DNA from: Tubulanus polymorphus
Taxonomy: Eukaryota > Animalia > Nemertea
Assembly (NCBI RefSeq): GCF_964204645.1
Contig: NC_134031.1
Location: forward strand, 16,851,807 to 16,915,806
Direction of reading: 5' to 3'
Length of the DNA stretch: 64,000 nt
The notes under the pieces were generated by a model, which saw nothing but the letters and a program-made list of their open reading frames with translations, was not told the origin of the DNA and made no database searches. How positions within the stretch are numbered: position 1 is the stretch's first letter; each line of letters starts with the position of its first letter. Position numbers and translations under genes: made by a program. This document shows positions 3,500 through 45,200 of the stretch, in pieces.

Positions 3500-4560
3500 C
3501 ATGTTGTGAAGATGTCACCGATACGAACAGCCGAACGAACGCCGGCCGACGACGACGTCTTAACGTATTGACTCGCGGGGCGGGCGTACGAGCGTGTGAA
3601 CATACTTAAAATCAAAATTGTCGCCGTTATGAAAAAAAATAAAAGCCGCTCGACTCGATGTAGCATTAATCTTGTCGTACCACGACAATCATTTCAATAA
3701 GAATGCGGAGCGCACGCGCCGCTGACAAACCGAAAGGCCCACGCTGAGTCCTCGCGACCGTGAGACCGGACCGCGGTTTCAACCTGTATACGATATATCG
3801 GTTCCTCTTATTGTTGACTTTTTAAATCTCCGAAAAGCTTTCGATATATTTATACGTACGACGACCTTATGAACTATGTTCTCCCACGACTATCGAAAAC
3901 AAATACCACCGGGGCCCTATTCACGGCACACGATGCGGGCACAATCGAAAAAGGGCCAACAAAGCGTGTGCCATCACCTAAAGCTATTTAATGCGTTGGA
4001 CTTTTAATTTTGATACCCCGAGACCAGGTGAAAAGCTTCTAGCGTGTGACATTAAAAATGCCGACCAGGACTTCGGGAGCTGTTCGACGATAAATCACCA
4101 CCTGCCCGATTGGAAGTTTCCCATGAACCGCGGAGACACGAGCACCTGACCCCGCACTGGCCTCAGTCAACCGACGCGCGACCCGACGTACACGCTTTAT
4201 CGCACACGTCAACCGACCACGATGAAAAACAAGCGAAAATTTCATTTCATTCATTTCACACGCACTAGTGTTCACTGACCAGAATAAGCCCGTATTTATA
4301 AAGTGAAATGAGAAACTTCGACGCGATTTCGAAACGACGAGTCTTTTGATCGAAATCAACGAGGAGAACGAAATCGGCGCAGGTTCCGACTGTTCGACTC
4401 GATTTCAACTGACGTATGTCCTGAACGCGAGATTATCGATGCGAGTTTTTGTCCGTAGCTTCAAGTAGCGGCAATTAAAAAATCGTCGAGGGCGCCGATG
4501 AATAGCTGACGCCGATTGAAGATTAATCGCGGTAATTACGTGGTCAGTGCAGACAATATG
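3500..4560. promoter_or_regulatory. CpG-rich, promoter-like tract
   Basis: Many CG/CGCG runs relative to the AT-rich flanks. Lies between candidate first exons on both strands. Confidence 0.35.
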
Positions 4561-4777: not shown

Positions 4778-7700
4778 GTGACGGGATTTGAAACTGATAG
4801 CTCGTCGTCCTCCATCTGTTCTTCGAGGGAACGAATTTCTGGTGGGAAAAAATCGCCCGAGCAAGTACTAGAAATCTTCAGCGCCGCACAATGAAACAAA
4901 GGAATCATTAGCATGAATGACTAGGAGTAGTAAAAATCAGTCACGCGCACACCACACACACACACACACACTCACACTCACTCCGATATACAGATGCAAA
5001 ACATATGCACCTTCTACAGTTTCCATTTAGATGACCTATAGCCGACAAAACCGATCGGTTTCTAACCCAAAAATGATAAGAGGTGGATGCAGACCAGAAG
5101 GTGAAACGCATATACCAGGATCTGTATTCCGGGAGGGGTATTAACACAAAGCGAATGAAACGTAACACCTGCAGTTCGAAAAACAGAAAAAATGCCGAAC
5201 AAAATTCTTCCATTACCGATATATCAGTTCGCCTCGCCACGAGCGAGACAACTCAACACGCGCGCGCAACAATACGAACATCTTTTTCGAACATATTTTT
5301 CCGCTCGCCGAGAAAACAATACTCGCGCTGCTGCGGTTATCTTTCGAATAAAACTTTCGGAAACGCGCGCTGCCTTAATCGCGAAAAAAAAAATATATAA
5401 GCTTCAAGCGAACCAGACGAAACGGTATAATCGAACCCGAAAACTCAACGGGAACTTGCGCGTAATCTGCGCACGCGAGAGACCTTACCCCCTGACCGGC
5501 ACTGTGCCAATATTGCATTTTTTTTCATGAAATAATACTCGTGCTGGTTGTGGTACTAAACGGTTAAAACGGATCTATTCCCAGGACATCTATTGCTAAA
5601 AACGGCACGGGTTAAAGAACATTTTTTCTCTTCGTCGGTTGCGTGCCAGAATTCCGAAGTGTCTACACAATGTTATACATATGATGAAGAGGCCTATAAT
5701 ACCAGGTATACAAATATGTAGTGTAGCATTCTAGGTCAGCGGAGGCTTTTTCACTATCGCTGATTTTCTTTTTCAGAGAAACTTCACGAAAAAATGAAAA
5801 TTCTTTTGATTCGGCGCAAAATACACGTATAATAGACGCAAGGCACTCTCTCCGCGGTCGAACTGCAAGTGTTCTCTCAAAGCACGCCATTGACCTGATT
5901 TTCAAAATGAAAAACTTTTAGGTCAACTCACTCAAAACTAAATACACCCGAATCTACCTACCGGGGTGAAGGAGTTTTGAATTCTTATATAAACGACTCG
6001 GGTGGTCACGAGAATTACGTCTATTTCATTTTTTCCATAACTTTAATAAACTACCTTCTTATTCTGAAGCAGATCGCGAAAATTCAATCCGTGACAAAGA
6101 CCTGAAGTCATCATCATTTCCGTTTGACCTAGTCAATGAAATATTTTTTGCTGTCAGACGTATCACACACATATATGTATATACATTACTCTCTTCATCT
6201 ACAAGCTAGCTGCCTGATATGATTGTAATATAATCATACATTTTTTTGTTCGCCACAAAATCGTGATTACCGAATTGCCATGAGTCTGAAACCAATTACG
6301 CAGCCACCGAGCCACAATACGAAATTAGCCGGGGTTATTAACCCAAAAGACTTTTAGGTGTGACAATAATGCTTAAACACACACCACGAATTAATGTACA
6401 CGTTCGCATAGCTGTAACAAGCAATCATCATATAGGCCACGATGAAGCTGTGTCTATAGAACGCTTATTTAGAATATTTTCAAACAAAAAATCATATCAA
6501 CCGCTATACTGGAATAGATTGGCATGGTTCAACCAACTCGATGAAGGCCCGGCCGGGACTGGCTTATGACAGCTCTTTTCAAACCCACTAAATATATATC
6601 TATATAGGATTTAAAAGATTAAAAGCAAATCTTATTTATCTATAACCAAAATGACACCAAAATTTCGAACTCTCCAGATCATCATCATCTCTGGCGAGAG
6701 TTCAAAACCTGGTCTATTTTGCTTTTAATTCTTGATAAATAGAATTCATTTCAATTTCTTAAATTCTGTATTTGTGGCTTTTAAACTTATAATCTTTTCT
6801 CCACGTGGGTGTGCAGGGTTTTCAGCGTACCACTACAGCCATTTTCTTGTTTTTATCTAACCGAGATTCATTTATTTGGATAACCTGTAAAATAACTTAC
6901 TTGCAGTAAGGGTTGCCGGTAACAGGGGTGACACATTGTTGATTATTCTTACACGGGTTCGGACTACATGACCGAAATACTCCTGAAATGAGAAAAAACC
7001 AATCAACGCTACTTTAAATTTCAGCGATCAGATTTATAGAGAACTTTTTTTTTTCTTGAAGAAAGCAGGTTAGGCTAGCTAAACTGTAATTTACCAGGAG
7101 AGAGAGTACTAGCGCAAGAAAAAAATTATTTGTTTTTATGAAATAGGAAAGAAATATAGAGGAATGAGTCAGGGGTGATGTAATGAGTGTTTGTATACGC
7201 AATAGTATAGTATAGTAAACTATATATCTAACAGGTAACAGCATACCTAGTAATATAGTTTTGTTGCGAGTGGGTTCAGCGGCGCAATAGCAATAAATCT
7301 TACCGATGTAATTTAAAGGAGATGGTCTGTATAGGCCTGGTAGATTTGACATGAAAATGCATATTCTTAACCAATGCGCTCAAAAAGTGCACAGCTCTGT
7401 CTTAAAATGGCTACAAATTTGAATGATGATGTGTCTGAATTGAGCGGTGCCATGAATCTCAACTCGTCTATTTTCAACATATATCTTATAGTACGCCTAT
7501 GTTTTTGACTAGTCAAGCGATATAACGCAAATTCGATAAGACTACGCGCAAAGAGGATACCATTCTTACTATCATATCTATAATGCTTCACGAAGTTAGC
7601 TCGAAGTTAAAGACCTGAAATGAGTTAGCAAACTATGTGTGTTTTACATGCTCAGTTCATTTCTTCGGTATAAGAGCGTGGGAAAGTGTGCAACTCATCT

Positions 7701-10700
7701 GTAAGCTACTATAATTCGCATGTAATAAATCTGTTCTGATTTTTCACTATCACAAAAGGATCGATCTCATAATTATCACATTTCGCTAGTGATTAAAATT
7801 AATAAACGGTTTTAACAGCAAGTTCATTTTCACGGCTTATAGGTGATCTAACGCCTTTGGTGAATTAATCTTCGCAATTAGTTAATTAAAGGTATGAGCA
7901 TGTGGGTAAACAATCACCACTAATTAACAAGAGCGCTATTAAGTACTCAATTAATGAGGAAATTCAATGCAGGTGTTTATTGTAAAGATCACTTAGAGCA
8001 ATCTATTTCTCTGACAACTGTTACAATTCTTACAAGATCTTAATTTTGTTTGTCAAATTCTAGTAGGAAGACATAAAATGTGTATTTTTTTTTTCATAAA
8101 GTTGTTTTGAAAAGCTACACAGTGTAAAAGCAAGCGCGCAGTTTGAGTCATTTATTAGAAACCGTGAGAACGGGGTCAAATTTTAACCAGTTTGTATGCA
8201 TGTGTAGTGAAGAAGAGAAGAAGGTATACTTCAGAGAAAATCTGAATATTGGCCAAGGGGCCAAAAAGCTCCAAATCAAATATCAAGGGCGACAGACAAT
8301 TAATTCATCTTAATGGAGTATATAAATACTGTATTAGATTCTCAAATTCCTTGATATTAAAGTCGATTTAATTGTTAATCAATGAAAACAGTATACACTC
8401 TTTTAGTATAGTATCTTACCTCGTACACTGGCTATCAAGCTGAATAGCAGGCACGCCAGCCAAAATACCCTAATATTCCACCGATGCCGCTTCATTCCTG
8501 CGGTAAAAACACTACGACAATTTTAATCCGAACATAAGGAAACTTTAAACCGAGCCGACATGCGCTGTCGACGTGCAGGCGACGAGTTATCCGAGTTTTA
8601 AGAGACGTGTTTACTATTCACCTCCTCTCACTGAACAAAGTTATTAACTACTGTCAAAGTAGTGCGCGCAATTGCTCCCATTGATATTCATTCGCCAACT
8701 TGAATGTGTGGTGCGGTCTGTCCAGAGCGCGTTCAGATAAATCTACCCGCTATTAATATGAATGGGATTTATAGCATATTCTAAGGCTTTGAAATTATAT
8801 TCGTGCTTTTTATAAATGTCTTAATCGGAATAAGCCGGTTTATGGTTCAAAAATTTAAATCCTCATTGATTCTGGACTACACAATCAGCGCACGCGGACA
8901 ACCGCACCACCTACGTTACCCAAACTTAAAATTTATTAGAATAGTTACGGTATGGTACTTCAGTATGTCGCACTTTCATGGTACATTACCTAAAAAATTC
9001 TCGCAAACATGGCTAAACATTTTGGAATACACAACAGAAATGTCTTATTCAAACCCATGCAAAAATCACAAAGATTTGATAGGATCCAGGATTGGGCATA
9101 ATATTTTTTGATAGCACCCATGTCAAGACCAGCCGCAAAATATTGATGTCAAATAGATGATTTGAGACCAAAACTGAAATTGCGAAACAAACACTTTAAT
9201 CAGAAGAAATAATGAATATATATCGATGTTTTTCGAGAACCTTAAACGATCTATCGCCGGTCTGCATTTTGCGAACCCGATTTACAGACAGCCGACTTTA
9301 AGTATAGGGTCTCATAGCTTTTGAGTGTTAATGTTGACATGAATCGTTACGGCATCAATTAGACAGCACGTGTTCTACGGATGCGAGTACAGCGACGACA
9401 TTTCTGTTGACAGGCGTTTAATTGGTGAATAAATTTCACACGACCATTTGGCATGGGCCGTAACAGTACCCGGCATGTGTCTCAGCACGCGACTCGCGTG
9501 GGTACAGACTTCAAAATGAAGACATTTTTTTCAAAAGCGAGAGGTTTCAAACAGCTACTACCAACAACACGACGCTCTGGGGAATGAATAATCGAACCCT
9601 CGTCATATTTTTTATTCTGTCCCACTGGTTTTTCGGTTTGAGTAAGAATTAGTTTACTACAAAAAATACATTTCATGTTGGTTTCTGTAGACAAGTGACT
9701 GATGTCTGATATAATTGAAGTAAAAACCCACAGAAAAACTGGATAAGAAATTGACGTTTCAGTCCAATTATATAAGCCGTTTTCAAATTGGTTTTTAAAA
9801 TTCCAAAATGTTTTTGAAAATGGCCCATAGCATTGGACCGAAACGTCAATTTCACATAATACACACAATATCACATCAACGCACCAATCTAAATTAATCT
9901 CGATTAAAGAAATCTTCCCGGCCGAAATGTAAGGTGAACAGACTTAATAGCATCGCGGGTTTTTATACACCATTTTGCGACTAGGTCTCATTTTGATTTT
10001 GGTGCATCGTAATAAACAACGTTGATAGCATATGCTAAGAGACAATAATAGTTATGGCCTGGCGACTTGTATGTTTGTTTTTGTGTATGTATATATCGAG
10101 GTTCGGGTTTAATTCTTTTTTTTTTCAAGTACCTGTTGAACAATTGCACGCAGTCTTTTGTTGAATTAGCCATCGAAAAACTGTGACTTATCACTAAAGT
10201 CCACACGACTGGTACTCGATACTATAGATTTGTGACCTCATTGATAATGTGTATTGGGGGACCTGTGAGTTGCTATGATATACGATTTTGAGAGACGGTT
10301 AACCAGCCTAAAATTCTAAAACCCGCTTACAAATTCAGAATTTAAAAGCAAGATTTATCATTTAAAAAAAACCAAAAACGGAGGACACAACGTTTCGAGC
10401 TCCCACGAGATATCATCTTCAAATATGAACTTAGAAGTTCTGTGTAGTTTTGTCACACAATCAGGTCCCCGTCTAGAGGAGGGCGGTGTTAGTCTGAATA
10501 CCAGTCGTTGTTACCGGTTCCCTACAACCGGTTGTTTGTAGAACGACGGCTAGGTACTAATAGCGGTGTGTGACTGCACATCCCAACGATGCTGGACTGG
10601 TCCAACTCCAGAATAGAAAATATAGGCATACATTATATTATGAAAATCCTATTGTTACCGCGTTATTGTTACTCATCTTTCGAAACACCTTGAACTTTAT

Positions 10701-11359: not shown

Positions 11360-11481
11360 CACAGGGGCTTGTCACAATTTGATAATGAATGGATGATACC
11401 AGTATCCCTATATAAAAAAGATTTTTTATATAGGCATACTGGTATCATCCATTCATTATCAAATTGTGACAAGCCCCTGTG
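11360..11481. mobile_element. Near-perfect foldback MITE (PIF/Harbinger-like)
   Basis: ~59-bp arms with one mismatch: CAG GGGCTTGTCACAA ... TTGTGACAAGCCC CTG. Confidence 0.75.
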
Positions 11482-12288
11482 ACTGTGTCTGTGAAAAGGA
11501 TATTGGGCTTCTTGTATTTTTAACAAAGTTTGGGGACTCACATTTGCGCACCTGACCATGAGCTGTTAAACAATTAATGATGAGTTACCTAGCTAAACCC
11601 TGCCATGGTTTGGTTTAAAAGTAAATGGGTATAGGCCTAAGCCTAACAACTCAAATCACTGTATGAAAAAATGTATAGATACTGGTGTACAGTAGTATAT
11701 TGTCTATTGAAATGAATAAACCTTTTCGACTTATAAAAACCAACTGGCCCTGGCAGATACCGCAACAAAATTTATTCTACTTCAATGTTAGTTGATGGGA
11801 TGAATGATTTTTTAAGGCGATTTTTTCTGAAATTCTGTTGAATGATGTGAAGGAATTCATATAGCCACATTGATTCACCATTCGAAACTATGAGGATAAT
11901 TGTGGCTAATTGTTCGATCTACTGCGCTGGTTTCTATTTATGATGATGGAATATCACACATAATTCTGCGGTGGTATATCGTTACATCAACGGCATTCTA
12001 ACAGCAGCTGCGGGTGCTGCTGCTGCTGAATATGATATTAATCATATCTATGAATAGTCACTCCCTGGAACTTTGTCAGTTGTAATATAAAAACTAAATG
12101 GCAGCCGCAGCGCCGCTAAAAATTAGATTTTTATAGGTATGTAATAAATCACCTCTTGTCTGGCATGGATCAGGGAATTTGGAGATATTGATTTTAATAA
12201 TCAGGGTATTCAAGGTGTCCATATCTAGTGTACGGAATCTGATTATTATGTAATTGATCAACATTTAAGAAAAAAGTATCCTTCTTTC

Positions 12289-12623: not shown

Positions 12624-14932
12624 CTTTCTATTTTCTACAAAAGCAGGAGTTTCTTATTACTAACCGCAGTAGTAGTCGTACTATGATGTGTTTAGAATGC
12701 TGTTATGGGGTGTGGTCCACAAATGTCGTCGTGTGTACGTGATTAGGGGTCATCACCATGGAAAACTTGAATCAGATAAATGTGGGGGAAATACCTGGTT
12801 TACTATCACTAATTGTGTCCTCAGATAAGACCATTGCCAATTAGCCTATAGCCTAGTCTATCTATATCCATTCGCTAAAACGTAATTTTCGAATTTATCG
12901 ATAGTTTTCTCATTATTATTGAACGTTTATCGGATTGAAATATTGCTGCGGCGACACTGCGAACATCTGTTCATATCGAATTCTCATTTCGAGAGTTGAT
13001 TATATAGATATACACACTTATGACCTGCGGAACCATATTTACCATTTAAGCCGCATGTATTTTGAGTAAAGCATCTGTTCGGCTGTTATGACGTATTCTA
13101 TTCAATTAAATCAGACTTCGTCACGGCCGGTGCTTCAATTGGAGGCTTCGTCAAAGGATATACACTCGTTTGCCTCATTCATGGTAAAATTATGGTTTTT
13201 ATTTCTTGATTCGTAATAAATCCGATCATGTTTATCGTATCGAACCTTATTCATAAATTAAGTCGATCAGAATTTTCCCCTATTAAGTCTTGATAAGACC
13301 TTATTTAGAATTTATATTATTGAGTTGGATACTGAACTATATATAGAGCCTTGGCACTGAATATGTACAATACATATATATCATAATATCATATATTGAA
13401 TTTTCCTTTCAATATTCGCATTTTATTAGTTACGAGCCCTTCCATTAATAAAATGGTCTTTCGATATACAGATCAGTTAAGGCACATCTGTAATGGTGGT
13501 TGAACATAATTAATAGGCGGTAGATTGCTTTGTGACACTGTTGTTGTTGATTTTGTCAACATTGATTAGGTTATAGACTTAAGTCTCTGTCAGAGTATTC
13601 TGTTGGGAATCATTTCCCGAAGTTAGCCTATAGCTGTAGACAGTTCGAGGACCAGTTATTTGTAGGTAGGGCTTCTTTAAATTTTATGTGTCAGTAAATG
13701 CGAGGTAAATATTTCATGGAAATGTCTCCTAAAGTACATTTATAAGTTATTTGATGAGTGACATGTTCATGTCCGTTGCAATCTTCATAAAAGTCACTGA
13801 TTACTGCGGATATACTGAACTACAGTAAACCTCGTCTTACTCAGACAAACTGGGACCAGCAAGCTAAGCGGACATCACAAAATGTATTTTATTTTTATGT
13901 CCCGACTTGGGCATGTCTGGAGAGGTTTACTGAACAGTATCATATCGTTTCTCTCAATAGAGAAATCATTTGTGGTCATTTTAGACTCAACAGGTCGTTC
14001 AACTAGTGATAATTGCCTAAAAGACAGGCCTTGGCCCTCGAAGCACAATCAGAATATATGGCGACAGCTTGAGTATGATCAAAAATCAATGCAACAGATT
14101 AAATTAACTGTTCTGAGCATGAACTACGTTCAATAACCATTCCCTGTTTGTTTTCCGGGCCTTTACAGAATAAATTTCCGAGAATGTATTGATGATTTGA
14201 ATAATAACACCAGTCACTTGCCAGTTCAGGCTGGGTGAAAGATTGCTTATCAGGGGCCAGTTGCTCAAAAGTTGGCCGGTGGATAGTTGACATAGTGCCA
14301 ATTAAAAGTTCATCGTTACTATGGTATTTATAAGTGGGCTGTCTTAAATCAATTTTTTAGAAACTGGTCCCTGAACCAGAACTGAAATTTGTACAAAAAT
14401 TCTGTCCATTTGACCATTCATTTATGTATTTTCTCTTTGGATTTCACTTCATTCCAAGCAAGTATGCTGATGGGTTAGTAAGGGACATAAACCAATGAAT
14501 ATGATTATCATTTTGATGTTAAAGAAATTACACGAATAACTTGGAATGCTGTCAATGTTACCTATGTCATCATAGTTACCATATATAGATGATGCCTTTT
14601 TAAAAATAGCGTCGATCAAAGATCTTTTTTCAAAGCGTCCTTCGGTTGAAGGACTATTTGAGACGTAATTATTCACACTCAAATTCGGGTTTCTCTCAAT
14701 GGCGGGTGATTGAAATATTTCCCTATATTCTTGCATTTTAAAAGAGCCCTTCAAACCCTTGAAGAATATTATTGCGCTCGATCTCGGGCCTGCGTAAGTA
14801 TGAACGTGTTTTCATCGAGGTTTAAAACCACAAATTATATCCTCTACACAACAGTTGAATAATGTCGCACCATTGAAAAAAACCGTTTCGAGTTTATAAA
14901 ACGATATCGGCAAAAAAAATTGAGAACGAATT

Positions 14933-23900: not shown

Positions 23901-26900
23901 TTTTCCAGTTTGTCGGTAGTCTAAAGAAAATGTGCTTTTACTTACATTTTAGCCAGCAAATTCATCGCAGCTGAAGTTTTGTCATTTTGTGAAATACGGC
24001 GGAAATGAGTATGTTGAAATCTGTTCAATTAAATTTTCTTAAAAAAAACCTACCAGTAACTAACTAATTTGGCTTGACTAATTTTTCCATTTGTAAATGA
24101 TGTTGTGATTCTAGTCCTGACTCAAGACAGTAAAAAATATTTACACATCTCTGCCTGCCAAAAATAATGTGTGGATATATTTAAACAGAATCAGAATAAG
24201 ATTTTGACACATATATGAAAAATGCTATGCCTATGTAACCGGCTGGTTGTTGTATCGGCAGGCTGGCTGGGGAACTAGCATTTACACCAGCGGTACAGGA
24301 TTCCATCCATCAGGAACAACAAGGCATTTACACCTTATATGTACAATCTTTATTGCATCCTGGAATGAGAATGATTATCATAACTTTACATAGTCTTTAT
24401 ATACAGAATCATGAGTATAATGTGAGAACTAGGTGATCAGAATCTTTCAATTTGTCTGATTCTTGATTTCGGAAATCTTTCAGGCTACACCTTACCGTAT
24501 AAGGCAGAGTCTACTAAGTACCCGCATTGATACATGGCCTCAAATCATTCAGTCATGATTATATCGTTATACTTGGTATCGAACTGTATTTTAGGTACAC
24601 GATTTATCTACAAATCTACAATCTGTTCATGTTGTTCTGGTTGATGAATTTCGTCGTCGCATTAGGTCAGATGACTTTAGCCGGAGCATTCGCCTCGTAT
24701 TACTGGGCATTCTCGAAACCAGCCGATATCCCCGCGTTCCCTCTCTCCGCATCATTTTGGAGATGTATTCGGTAGGACGGATAAAATATCACAGATCTAA
24801 AGTACCAGATAATTCTAATGATTCGTTCCACGTTGAAAACTTTTCTTAACCGTTTATAGATACCATCTCGGCTCTATTGCGTTTGGTTCATTGATTATCG
24901 CAATTATTCAATTGATACGTGCAATGCTTGAATACCTTGATCATAAGCTGAAAGGCTCGGAAAATCCAGTCGCAAAGTTTTTCTTGAAGTAAGTGTACAA
25001 TTTTGACATTTTTTTTATCGCAGTCGCGATAAAAGTTCTTTTAAATTAACGTGCCATATTTGATTTTAGGTGTTTGAAATGTTTCTTCTGGTGTCTTGAG
25101 AAGTTCATGAAATTCCTCAATAAGAATGCGTACATCTTGGTAAGTCAAGTTGAACGAAAAAATGAAAAAAATAAAAGTTGGTTGTCAAGAATGAAAAAAA
25201 CCACATTTTATTCACATTTTTCATATGCAATAATCTTCCTACTTCAGATTGCGGTATATGGTAAAAACTTTTGTACGTCAGCAAAGAATGCATTCTTTTT
25301 GATTTTGAGGAATATTGTAAGGTTTGTGTTGCTGACGGTTGTTTCTATAAAGAATGTAATTATGCGATACAAAGTATTTATTTGAGCATTTTGTCCTACA
25401 TTTAATTTTGTGTCAATTTTCAGGGTTGTGGTTATTGACAAAGTGACCGATTTTGTCATATTCATCGCGAAGCTAGTAGTGGTCGGAGCTACAAGTAAGT
25501 TAAACACGAACCTAGAAGTCTGAATTTTTATGATTTAATCCTAAATTCTTAAAGATTATCAACATTGTAAAAATCTTAAGTTTTTCAGTGGTTTTTCTAG
25601 AATCGCACAAACGGCCCTATTCTGTTGTTTTCACACAGTGTCAGCATTCAGAAATGTATATTTTATCGAGCACAAAGTTCACCACTAGTCGTGTTTATAT
25701 TATTTTCTCACGTACAGCTTGTTTGTTTATGCTGTTGCAAGGGACATTAAAAAAATATGAGTTTGTCTCGTCGGTAATTGATAATCTAAAAAATCCTGCG
25801 GGCATTATCGTTGTAAGTAATAGCATTGTTGTCGGCACCTGATCCTCATTTAGACGAGTCTTGTGATGTAGATAATCCCGATTTTATTATACCCAAAAGT
25901 TTTGGAGCATGGTTTGTTGGTTGCATGGTGTGAATAATTGATTAGAATCGACTCTTGCTTCGCAGATAATGCACTCACAAAATTTGCGCATCCGATCTTA
26001 TAGAAAGCAGTATTAGTGGACACAAAATGAATTCTAGAAAATTCAGTGTTGTCATAGATGAGAAATGCTTCGGTTATATGTATGAAAATATATTTATCCT
26101 GCTTATGCTATGTGTGAACAATCCCCCAGAATCTGTGAAAATTATTCAAATTCGCATGCGTTGATTTATCTATGTATTTTGCATGTGTTTTCAGCTGTAG
26201 CTGCGTTTTTCTTCTTCGACGGGCGAATTCCGTTTATCAGTAATTATTCGCCTAACCTACAGTACAACCTAGTCCCAGTTATCGTAAGTACAACCTATGC
26301 TTCGCGCAGAGCCAGTTCCGCACAGTTACGAATACAAATTCCTCCTCAAAGTTGAATAATGAAAATGAACTATCGGTGATTATAACCTCCCCAGTTTTCC
26401 CCATTGCTGTGGAATTGGATCTAGATTGTAAATTGAATTTAAACATTGATGCTTTACGCTTGAAAAGCCACAAGACCAAAACATTCTGTGTGACCTTATT
26501 TCATCCTTCCTTATTTGTTGGTTCTTAATCGGTACCTCAAACTCAACTTGTAGAAAGCTGTGGTTAGTAGTGGGTCAGTGAGCTAATATTTTACTAAATT
26601 TCCTCATGATGTAATAATATCTTGGAATCGTTTAAGCTATTTACATATCATTCTTCCAAGGTAATATGAACCAGTTGGTACTGAGTAGGAAATCATTTTA
26701 GCATTTTAGTGTTCGAATAATATGTTTGGATTTTCTAGGTAATCGCTATTGGATCATACATTATAGCCGCCTGCTTCTTCAGTGTTTATAACATGGGAGT
26801 GGATACTTTATTCTTATGTTTCCGTAAGTACTACGATACTACAGTAGAACCAGCTTAATTTGGCTCATTTGGGAAAAACCAAATTCATCCCGTTTGATAT

Positions 26901-41449: not shown

Positions 41450-42296
41450 TGCAATCGCGAGATATATTCCTTAATCGGAGCTCAACAAATAAATTTTGTA
41501 CTAAAAAGCTCAACCGGAAAGTGCCAGATTTAAGAGCTTGTACGCATGCGCTAGACTCAATAATTTATGTTCTCGCGGTTTCTCGCGATTGTAAGCTCGA
41601 TCCGAGATTAAGTGTTCAGTACACTAGACCTAAGTTGTGTTAGTGTCTCGATCTAAATTGAATATCGAACTAAATATGCGTCTATGATTTAATTCTTTCA
41701 TATGGCGTGTGCTCTAAAAGTGAAAGGTGGTTTGGATTCGAACCCCGGTGGTGTATGGAGCCGGCGATCTCAGTTCTCTTTCAAAAATCGCGGGAAATCG
41801 CCCTACCATATAAAAATAGCATTTTCAAAATCAATTGATTATCTCAATATAGGGATATTAAAATCGTGAGCTATTATGGCATTTATTTACATGTATATCT
41901 CGAAAAATGTAATGCCAAAATCTCGTTCACGTGGTTTCTATTGACCAATCAGAACTCATTATCGCGACGCTGAGTCACAGGTTGTTGGCGTAATTTTCTG
42001 TCGCGTCTCAACAAATGCCGCTATTTCGCATCTTTAGCCGGCAAAAATTTCCCCTTATCGCGCATAAGCCGAAAGGATAGGACATTATCTTACGTACCCC
42101 GACCCTAAATAGTAAAACTAGAGGGTAATTTGGGCCCAATTCCTAAAACTCGGGGTACTACGAAACCATGTGACCTGAATCGACCAATGAGAGATCGTCG
42201 TTTTCAAAAGCGAGTATAAAAGCTCAATCGACAAGCTCGCGGAAGCCATTACAGGGTATCAGGGCCGGTAATGTTCCGGCCGAATCCTGCATCAAA
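41450..42296. promoter_or_regulatory. Divergent (bidirectional) promoter region between WDR5 and the BET gene
   Basis: Start codons 1.25 kb apart, head-to-head. NRF1-like ACGCATGCGC 41542, TCTCGCG motifs near 41571-41590, CACGTG 41928, CCAAT 41945 and 42184, TGAGTCA 41971, TATAAAA 42215. Confidence 0.7.
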
Positions 42297-45200
42297 ATGG
42301 ATACGAAGACCCATCCGGCACTGCAAGGCTACAAGCAATATGCGCAGGACGTTGCTGCAGGGTACTGTTTCAACCTTTTAATGTATTGTGGCTATTTTAG
42401 CGTTAAAATCGCCGATTAAAAATCCAATGCTCGCTCAGCCGCCATTGTGAAGGTGCCCTCGTATGCAACGTTGAAAGTGTCCCACATTTCTGATCGTTTA
42501 CGCTTCTCGTATACGTTTTCAAATCGAAATTGTACGTCCCTTAAGCGCTCCAAGTCTGCCTCCCTATAAACCAATGTCTTTAATTGCTGAATTGCATCAC
42601 GAAAGGTTCGTTTTCCCCCGTTTAAATTTGCTGCTCAAACGCGTAGTACGTCGTTAATTATCGGCAGCAGCCATGATGCCAGTCTCTTTTTTGGACCGAT
42701 TTTCTGGGTTAGTTGAAGGCAGATGCTGATTCCTACTATCGATGTATGTTCCCAATGGTGTACAGCATTTAGTTGATCAGTTTATTTTCATTCATTTCAA
42801 TGGGAAAGTTATAAAATTGATGCTTACAGGCTGATTACCCTGGCCGCTGCGGATTTCAATTCTCAAAATTTTATCCCATTTTCGACCCCCCTCGACGAGC
42901 GGTGGACGAAACAATGATCGCATCTGATACTACATTTTACTATTGTCGTCATTTGAAATTTTTTGTATCGTTTTTGAAAATTTCTATTTTGCCGAAATGA
43001 CGACCTTCTTGTCGCCTGAGTTCTGAATTATGTCGAGTTTGAAATTATCGAACTTGGTAGATTACTATGGAATCTGAAGTGTACTTATGATGGTATAGGT
43101 GAATTTAAATGCTTTTTGGAAAAATTGTCGGTCAGATAGGACTATAATGTGATTTTCCCAGATTTTGGAAATCGGTCAGTTTGGGCCCCAAAAATAGTAC
43201 AGATAGAGTTGTGGTCCTAGTAGCTGTTGACGGAGGAAAAGCTATTTATTACAGTTTCAAAGACCCATTAACTCGAAAATTTTCAATAATTCACGCTTTT
43301 GATTTTGATCTTGTAGGAACGGTGCTACTACTGATGACGGTGATTCAGTAAGTATCGATTTAAAAGTCGTTTTTTTGCGCGAAATCAATTCGAAACTGAT
43401 CTTCGATGTTAATGTTTTATCGTCGAACTTTTTCAGAATGATGCCTGTCTCGTCTGTAAAAAATTAGGCAGAACTTGTCCGGACACTGCAAAGGTTAGTT
43501 GGGTTGATGGCCGAGTGAGAAGCTTCTGATTATTGTTCTCGAGTTTTAAGCGTCGTAGTTTTCGCGAGATCGCTAATACAATCGGTAATCAATAACATTT
43601 CTCTGACCTACAGTCATCTTTACAGAACGGATCGGCGAGTGACGATGGCAGTGCCAATTCCACCACTGCTGAAACTAACAACAGTAAAGGCAAGAACGGA
43701 CCGTCGAAAAGAGGCCGAAACACGAACCAGTTGCAATATCTGTGTAGAACTGTCATGAAAGGTGTATGGAAACATCAGTTCGCGTGGCCGTTCCATCAGC
43801 CAGTCGATGCGCAGAGACTCAATTTACCTGTAAGTTCCGTTCAGCTTCATTATCAATTACATATGGGATCATTCATTTATTACGTACGCATAAAATTCGA
43901 ATTTTTCAACCCCCCTCTGTACGCAAAATCGGCCATTTTTTCATATACATTAAGCATAACAGTACGCAATTGCACTGACCCCCCTCCCCTAATGCATACA
44001 TAATAAATGAATGACCCCTATACCCTCCTGTTTCATTCCTAGCATCGGTTCGTGAGAGACGTCGAATCAAAATTATCCCTATTTCGAAAACCATAAAAAT
44101 GACTCCGATGGTGTTCCTAGAGTAGCGTGATACCGATTTAACTGATATCTGTAACATCGTTCGTTAACGTAATAATTGTAGGATTATCACAAGATCGTTA
44201 AACACCCGATGGATCTCGGCACGATCAAAAAACGCTTGGAAACGAATTACTACTACAGCGCAAAGGAATGCCTCGAAGAGTTCAATATGATGTTTACGAA
44301 CTGTTACATCTACAACAAACCTGGAGAGGTAGGCTTATGTGATTAGAATGTGTATGATAAAAGTCAACCATTTGCAGTAGCCCCAAGCATTTTCGTATCG
44401 CCCTCTGAAAATCATCCCCCGTTTTAAAAAGTTAGCTGATCCTTTTCATGGGTTAATGTCAATGTAATTATCAGTGTTACTGTTTTGTTGAGTAAGATAA
44501 TATAACGAATAGCATTATGCATTTGAATTAAGCTTATTTCATATATTTTGAACACGAAAGCTTTGAAACTTAAACATCCTCAATAACTACGAAACTAAAC
44601 AATTAAGATAGCCCATCAAGCACGTTAGCTACCGCCTACGAGTTATCTAGGTAGATTCTTCAATTTGAACAAAATGTTTATTCTCAATGAACAATGGACG
44701 ACCGTAGTATAGCTCTATTGTCTGCTATGAAATATCTGGCGGTAGTAGCTACTGTAGGTAGCATCGTATGATCAGCATGGCAGCTAAATGCGTTACGATA
44801 CAGAAGAACCTGCTTAATTCGGATCATTCGGGACCAACTACGAAATCCATCCGGTTTACGTTAACTTGGATTAAGATTCATTTTCCCGTAATATTAATGA
44901 ACAAATGGACTGCAAATATCGTCTGGATTAGACCAAAATCTGGATTAAGCAGGTTTGATAATAAAGTCAATGTCGGTATTGTATGCAGGGTCCAATCTAA
45001 GGAATGACAGCCACTTGCCCGGGGGGGGGGGGCAAGCATATCTGAAATTTCGCTTGCCCCCTCCAAAAGCTACCTGCTCTACACAGGCAGTTCGATTGGT
45101 GGCACTATCATCCGTTGTATCGAGTGGGAAAAAAGCTTTGTGACATAAAATTGCACTAGCCCGGGGGACAAGTGATAATGATAACTTACATGCCCTGATG

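Follow-up and report, generated by a model that had tools for sequence, protein, structure and literature searches.

Alternative exons mark the parts of a protein that an organism needs in several versions. In arthropods, Dscam1 and myosin heavy chain carry arrays of variant exons of equal length and the same phase, from which one is chosen. Abascal et al. 2015 (PMC4494069) describe two further cases: vertebrate SLC44A2 and SLC44A5 contain mutually exclusive homologous exons at the 3' end, which alter the cytoplasmic C-terminal tail, and in ion channels, for example of the SCN family, mutually exclusive exons exchange a membrane segment. The function of the CTL/SLC44 proteins themselves is a matter of debate; choline transport by this family is disputed and a non-transport role has been argued for (PMC13160678).

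The window analysed here, a 64-kb stretch of the genome of Tubulanus polymorphus, contains a gene of the CTL/SLC44 family on the + strand at ~17.4 to 27.3 kb. In a six-frame search of the whole genome, PF04515 matched this gene exon by exon over profile positions 1-321, with several matches above the cut-off, and this match over the length of the gene, together with a C-terminal region of the CTL2 type, assigns it to the family. The closest named proteins, found by protein word searches with the neighbouring exons, carry the labels 'member 2/4/5'. The genome has a single locus of the CTL2/4/5 type and two other PF04515 loci, both on another contig and at least one of them of the CTL1 type:

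G000:C2:28022204-28026110 (L001, L006, L007), PF04515 locus with a C-terminal region of the CTL1 type
G000:C2:4663765-4667536 (L002, L005), second PF04515 locus

In both of these loci the upstream exon also codes for the end of helix M9, and only one copy of the region is present. In the CTL2-type gene, two open frames for TM1 are visible. The same gene has a 108-nt intron (25140-25247) between constant exons, whose length is a multiple of three and which is free of stops in frame (open frame 25050-25382); its retention would add 36 residues and leave the frame intact.

Towards the 3' end of the gene, a first-pass annotation of the window had proposed a mutually exclusive pair of exons, here called A and B. 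They lie between two constant exons, in the following order:

25424-25494, + strand, constant upstream exon, inner part of helix M9, ending in phase 1, with a GTAAGT donor
25718-25812, + strand, exon A, candidate alternative exon of 95 nt with an AG acceptor and a GTAAGT donor, open from phase 1 to 0
26195-26283, + strand, exon B, standard exon of 89 nt with an AG acceptor and a GTAAGT donor, phase 1 to 0
26739-26825, + strand, constant downstream exon, rest of helix M10

The coordinates, the lengths of 95 and 89 nt, the phases (1 to 0) and the gtaagt donors were all found as proposed; A and B are neighbouring exons with common entry and exit phases and usable splice sites. Both begin with CT after the AG and complete the same split Thr codon. 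In a local frame check of the joined exons, the frame ran on with A alone or with B alone. Inclusion of A and B together (184 nt) had been predicted to shift the frame and, indeed, a stop was found right at the junction of the two exons; skipping of both led to a stop within ~20 codons. Transcripts with both exons or with neither would be unproductive through these early stops and would probably be degraded. Steric exclusion is unlikely to keep A and B apart, because the intron between them measures 382 nt.

The position of the variable segment in the protein was determined by comparison with human CTL1. The downstream exon aligned with residues 575-601 of human CTL1 (PDB 7wwb, 9qu3; E 9e-4), the end of the upstream exon was placed at about residue 551 by the alignment of a full-length relative, and the variable exon corresponds to about residues 552-574. 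Taken by themselves, the exon peptides of 23 and 29 residues had no match in the PDB. In the CTL1 structures, a large extracellular domain links M1 and M2, and a putative pocket is lined by N533 and D537 of M9 and by E591 and M592 of M10 (PMC13160678). Two acidic residues of the upstream exon align with N533 and D537, and the region covered by the downstream exon includes E591 and M592. As placed by these alignments, the variable segment runs from the outer end of M9 through the M9-M10 loop into the start of M10, with the pocket residues in the constant exons, which agrees with the 'late TM/loop' placement proposed before. Judging from the published CTL1 topology, the M9-M10 loop is predicted to face outward.

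To compare this region between animals, contigs were gathered by protein word searches with the neighbouring exons, by contig look-ups and by one metagenome scan. The CTL2 exons of these contigs were 70-100% identical, exon by exon, to those of the window; one contig (L012) was left out for being too short. More than one copy of the variable exon with known positions was present in three contigs:

L014 (ENA ERZ25069853), 95 nt at 11417-11511, then 89 nt at 13421-13509, between the same constant exons
L015 (same sample as L014), 3587-3673 and 5558-5641, second contig with the pair
L017 (ENA ERZ25069580), six copies of 119 nt at 5972-6090, 7160-7278, 7589-7707, 7990-8108, 8356-8474 and 9204-9322

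Both exons of the L014 pair are open, are flanked by AG and GT(A/G)AGT and have the phases, lengths and order of A and B in the window; they are clear members of the exon family and 57% identical to each other. In L017, all six copies are open and have AG and GT(A/G) signals, and two of the six are strongly divergent. At least two copies of 119 nt were found in L019 (JAAUYG01). One copy each was present in L013 (ERZ25084518), L018 (SRR14864947), L021 and the snail-type contig L011, in which a single 89-nt exon of the same phase lies at the position of B. In Limulus (L016) one copy was seen, in a locus with assembly gaps in which the downstream exon was not found. The copies of L014, L017 and L019 occupy the same intron with the same phases as A and B. 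From these contigs, the exon that encodes the M9-M10 tip is a recurrent target of tandem duplication, most extensively in the six-copy array of L017, with the copies kept intact. If the copies are used singly, they are expected to stay intact, and recurrent duplication at this site raises the prior for an A/B pair in the worm. Tandem arrays of the M9-M10 tip exon of CTL2, with up to six copies, were not found described in the literature searched.

The comparison contigs contained further features in and around these exons. In L015, the exon that corresponds to the conserved 58-residue exon of the window (24596-24769) is frameshifted, which makes this contig look like either a damaged copy or a second haplotype. 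Upstream of its complete 58-residue exon, L014 itself carries two additional, partial copies of the 5' part of that exon (5796-5858 and 5956-5997). In L013, a stop-containing pseudo-copy of the preceding constant exon (10029-10100) lies 220 nt upstream of the real exon, and a LINE-like reverse-transcriptase ORF (5308-8325) is located in a long intron. Downstream of the 89-nt exon of L011, a minisatellite (42144-42974) repeats the exon end and the intron start; its peptide-like units all end in P-I-I-V-S-I-L-A-D.

One possibility is that exon A arose by accident, as an open stretch whose splice-like signals are fortuitous as well, and has no meaning. With loose criteria (any AG..GT, any tract), 43 open combinations of 60-150 nt in phase were found in the intron that contains A and B, which speaks for this explanation, as does the similarity of the A and B peptides, which is at chance level (see below). 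Since loose criteria give many open AG..GT segments, the evidential weight lies on the consensus donor and the acceptor tract. Strict criteria (AG, open from phase 1 to 0, 80-104 nt, pyrimidine-rich acceptor, GTAAGT donor) left only A and B in the 128 kb that the two strands of the window amount to; one segment of this kind turned up in only 0.26% of the shuffles of the A/B-containing intron. Further, the hydropathy of the encoded peptides was compared. Averaged over residues 1-8, the middle part and the final five residues, it was 1.84, -0.42 and 2.92 for A and 1.94, -0.67 and 3.02 for B. A falls within an envelope that was built from 11 other exon copies with A left out. Of 20,611 open stretches of 32 codons picked at random elsewhere in the window, 0.8% did so too, and only 3 matched the values of A itself. 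Among 32 open AG..GT segments of 74-125 nt in the same intron, the envelope was passed only by A, B and a segment with a weak donor (25818-25927). Exon A is coding-like for its position, with hydrophobic ends and a polar middle, like B. The hydropathy criterion is independent of the splice signals, which makes a chance origin of A very unlikely; the test is somewhat weakened, since it was chosen after the peptides had been seen. In addition, A has the same length, 95 nt, as the first exon of the L014 pair. Taken together, we consider an origin of A by chance to be highly improbable.

The relationship of A to B and to the exon family was analysed by pairwise and profile comparison. The peptides had been reported to align loosely, which is true as such, but the global alignment (score 16) was not above chance, as 5.7% of the shuffles were as good, and it gives no evidence of homology. 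Against a profile of the 11 other copies, A scored 1.2 bits (7.5% of the shuffles as good) and B 26.7 bits (no shuffle as good). B and the most divergent copies of other animals reached 18.7 to 37.1 bits, again with no shuffle as good, and even the two most divergent copies of L017 had 18.7 and 34.3 bits, compared with the 1.2 bits of A. By neither method could sequence homology of A to B or to any other copy be detected, and A and B agree only in length class, phase and hydropathy; they do not qualify as homologous exons. With the 95-nt exon of L014, A has 12% of the residues in common, and orthology of these two exons would not follow from their common lengths and order. The GC content is 0.347 for A, 0.32-0.36 for the introns and 0.438 for B. 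The peptide of exon B has an aromatic M9 end, carries an N-x-S sequon in its loop and closes with a weakened version of the conserved L-N-Y-Y-L-V-P-V-I-type end of the family; the peptide of exon A has no N-x-S/T sequon, no aromatic run and no family end, and its loop is more charged.

With the conserved 58-residue exon as query, phmmer retrieved CTL2-type proteins of many animals from 1.84 billion representative proteins, and each of those that cover the variable region has a B-like segment. Judged by these proteins, exon B is the standard exon of CTL2-type proteins. The top match of this search (P0001), a protein of 561 residues, contains a CTL segment of ~140 residues twice and is probably a mis-assembled or mis-called model. 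The A peptide matched only itself in its own genome. An A-like protein was not found in a word search of 5.8 billion proteins with the 102-codon open frame of A as query, which covered proteins of 56-178 residues, nor was an A-like peptide found in a metagenome contig scan of limited reach; given this coverage, the negative results carry little weight.

These results bear on the possibility that A is a relic: it would descend from an old duplicate, or from an exon once in use, and would no longer be spliced in, leaving B alone in use. A has no detectable homology to the family and is unlike every other copy, its base composition is intron-like and no A-like peptide was found in the searched collections, all of which would fit a relic. 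However, drift that erases similarity should also erase an open frame, a consensus donor and a hairpin-like hydropathy, and A keeps all three. We therefore regard a relic as unlikely. Rather, A is probably a fast-evolved or replaced variant within a true pair, of which B is the standard form.

As to regulation, two copies of TGCATG had been noted at 25922 and ~26180, and both were found in the intron between A and B:

25922-25927, + strand, TGCATG, 110 nt downstream of exon A
26180-26185, + strand, TGCATG, within the pyrimidine tract that precedes exon B, 9 nt from its acceptor

Two such motifs in the 382-nt A-B intron were obtained in 0.5% of the shuffles and in ~1% of the 382-nt windows of the 64-kb sequence. 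L014 likewise has a TGCATG, placed 117 nt beyond its 95-nt exon, and in both L014 and L017 the variable region has a higher density of the motif than the remainder of the locus. From a site downstream of an exon, Rbfox-type factors usually favour its inclusion, and from just before an exon they usually repress it; the UGCAUG motifs near A and B are located at positions that predict a switch of this type. The genome was searched in six frames for the Rbfox C-terminal domain (PF12414) and no match was obtained; conservation of this domain is weak, and introns interrupt it.

Competing RNA pairing was considered as well. An element at 26031-26048 can pair with 25586-25603 upstream of A (15/18) or with 26727-26738 at the downstream acceptor (11/12). 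Such pairing could loop out A or B, and the layout would suit a choice between exons. Matches as long as these are expected by chance over 1.2 kb of AT-rich sequence, and no similar element stood out in the L017 array. Because the matches were of chance length and none was outstanding in the six-copy array, RNA pairing was rejected as evidence.

A stop right at the A-B junction and TGCATG motifs that point to regulated splicing are also features of a regulatory poison exon, that is, an exon which, when joined with B, shifts the frame, leads to mRNA decay and in this way tunes the amount of protein; the lack of family constraint on the A peptide would suit such a function. For a poison exon, however, there is no need of an open frame in the matching phase, or of a peptide with the hydropathy of the segment to be replaced; A has both. 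In other animals, moreover, the exons of the tandem arrays are clearly protein-coding variants. We judge this explanation of A to be decidedly unlikely.

In sum, we consider it probable that A and B are a mutually exclusive exon pair in the only CTL2/4/5-type gene of the worm. Of the pair as it had been proposed, the common phase, the enforcement by the reading frame and the hydropathy stand, and arrays elsewhere agree with it; sequence homology between A and B and a conserved A in relatives were not recovered. One of the two exons would be taken per mRNA, and the reading frame would enforce this choice, as mRNAs with A and B or with neither would meet an early stop, be unproductive and probably be degraded. 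The piece exchanged would be the extracellular tip of the last helical hairpin, which takes in the outer M9 end, the loop and the beginning of M10. With B, the tip would show a run of aromatic residues, a single glycosylation sequon in the loop and a conserved beginning of M10. With A, the hydrophobic-polar-hydrophobic layout would be the same but the sequence unrelated; the loop would carry more charge, and both the sequon and the run of aromatic residues would be absent. The outcome would be two proteins with a common core and a different outer rim, which may differ in function. An Rbfox-type factor that binds UGCAUG after A, promoting A, and UGCAUG just before B, repressing B, may set the choice.

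What varies in this protein would be its first helix and the outer tip of its final hairpin, with the putative pocket residues constant. If exon A is used, the two natural isoforms are a ready-made experiment on the role of the outer rim. As a tentative idea, one spiralian lineage might diversify the M9-M10 tip of CTL2 by means of one to six alternative exons, with the variant of the worm replaced by a dissimilar sequence of the same layout; the outer rim, together with a swappable first helix, might be tuned cell by cell, for a partner-binding or lipid-facing role over the central pocket.

Read in this way, the A/B pair adds to a kind of splicing that is already known. It resembles vertebrate SLC44A2 and SLC44A5, as described in PMC4494069, in that genes of the same family have mutually exclusive exons in the coding region. 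It differs from their tail exons in that the worm, a spiralian, would swap the extracellular M9-M10 tip, and in that one of its copies is without recognisable homology. With the SCN-type exons of the same source it shares the exchange of a helix/loop piece of a polytopic membrane protein around a constant core, but those exons differ by few residues, whereas A and B of the worm share almost none. The six 119-nt copies of L017 look like a small cluster of the type known from Dscam1 and myosin heavy chain. Unlike in those clusters, docking/selector pairing is not above chance here, the worm has two copies only, and the frame alone already penalises double inclusion.
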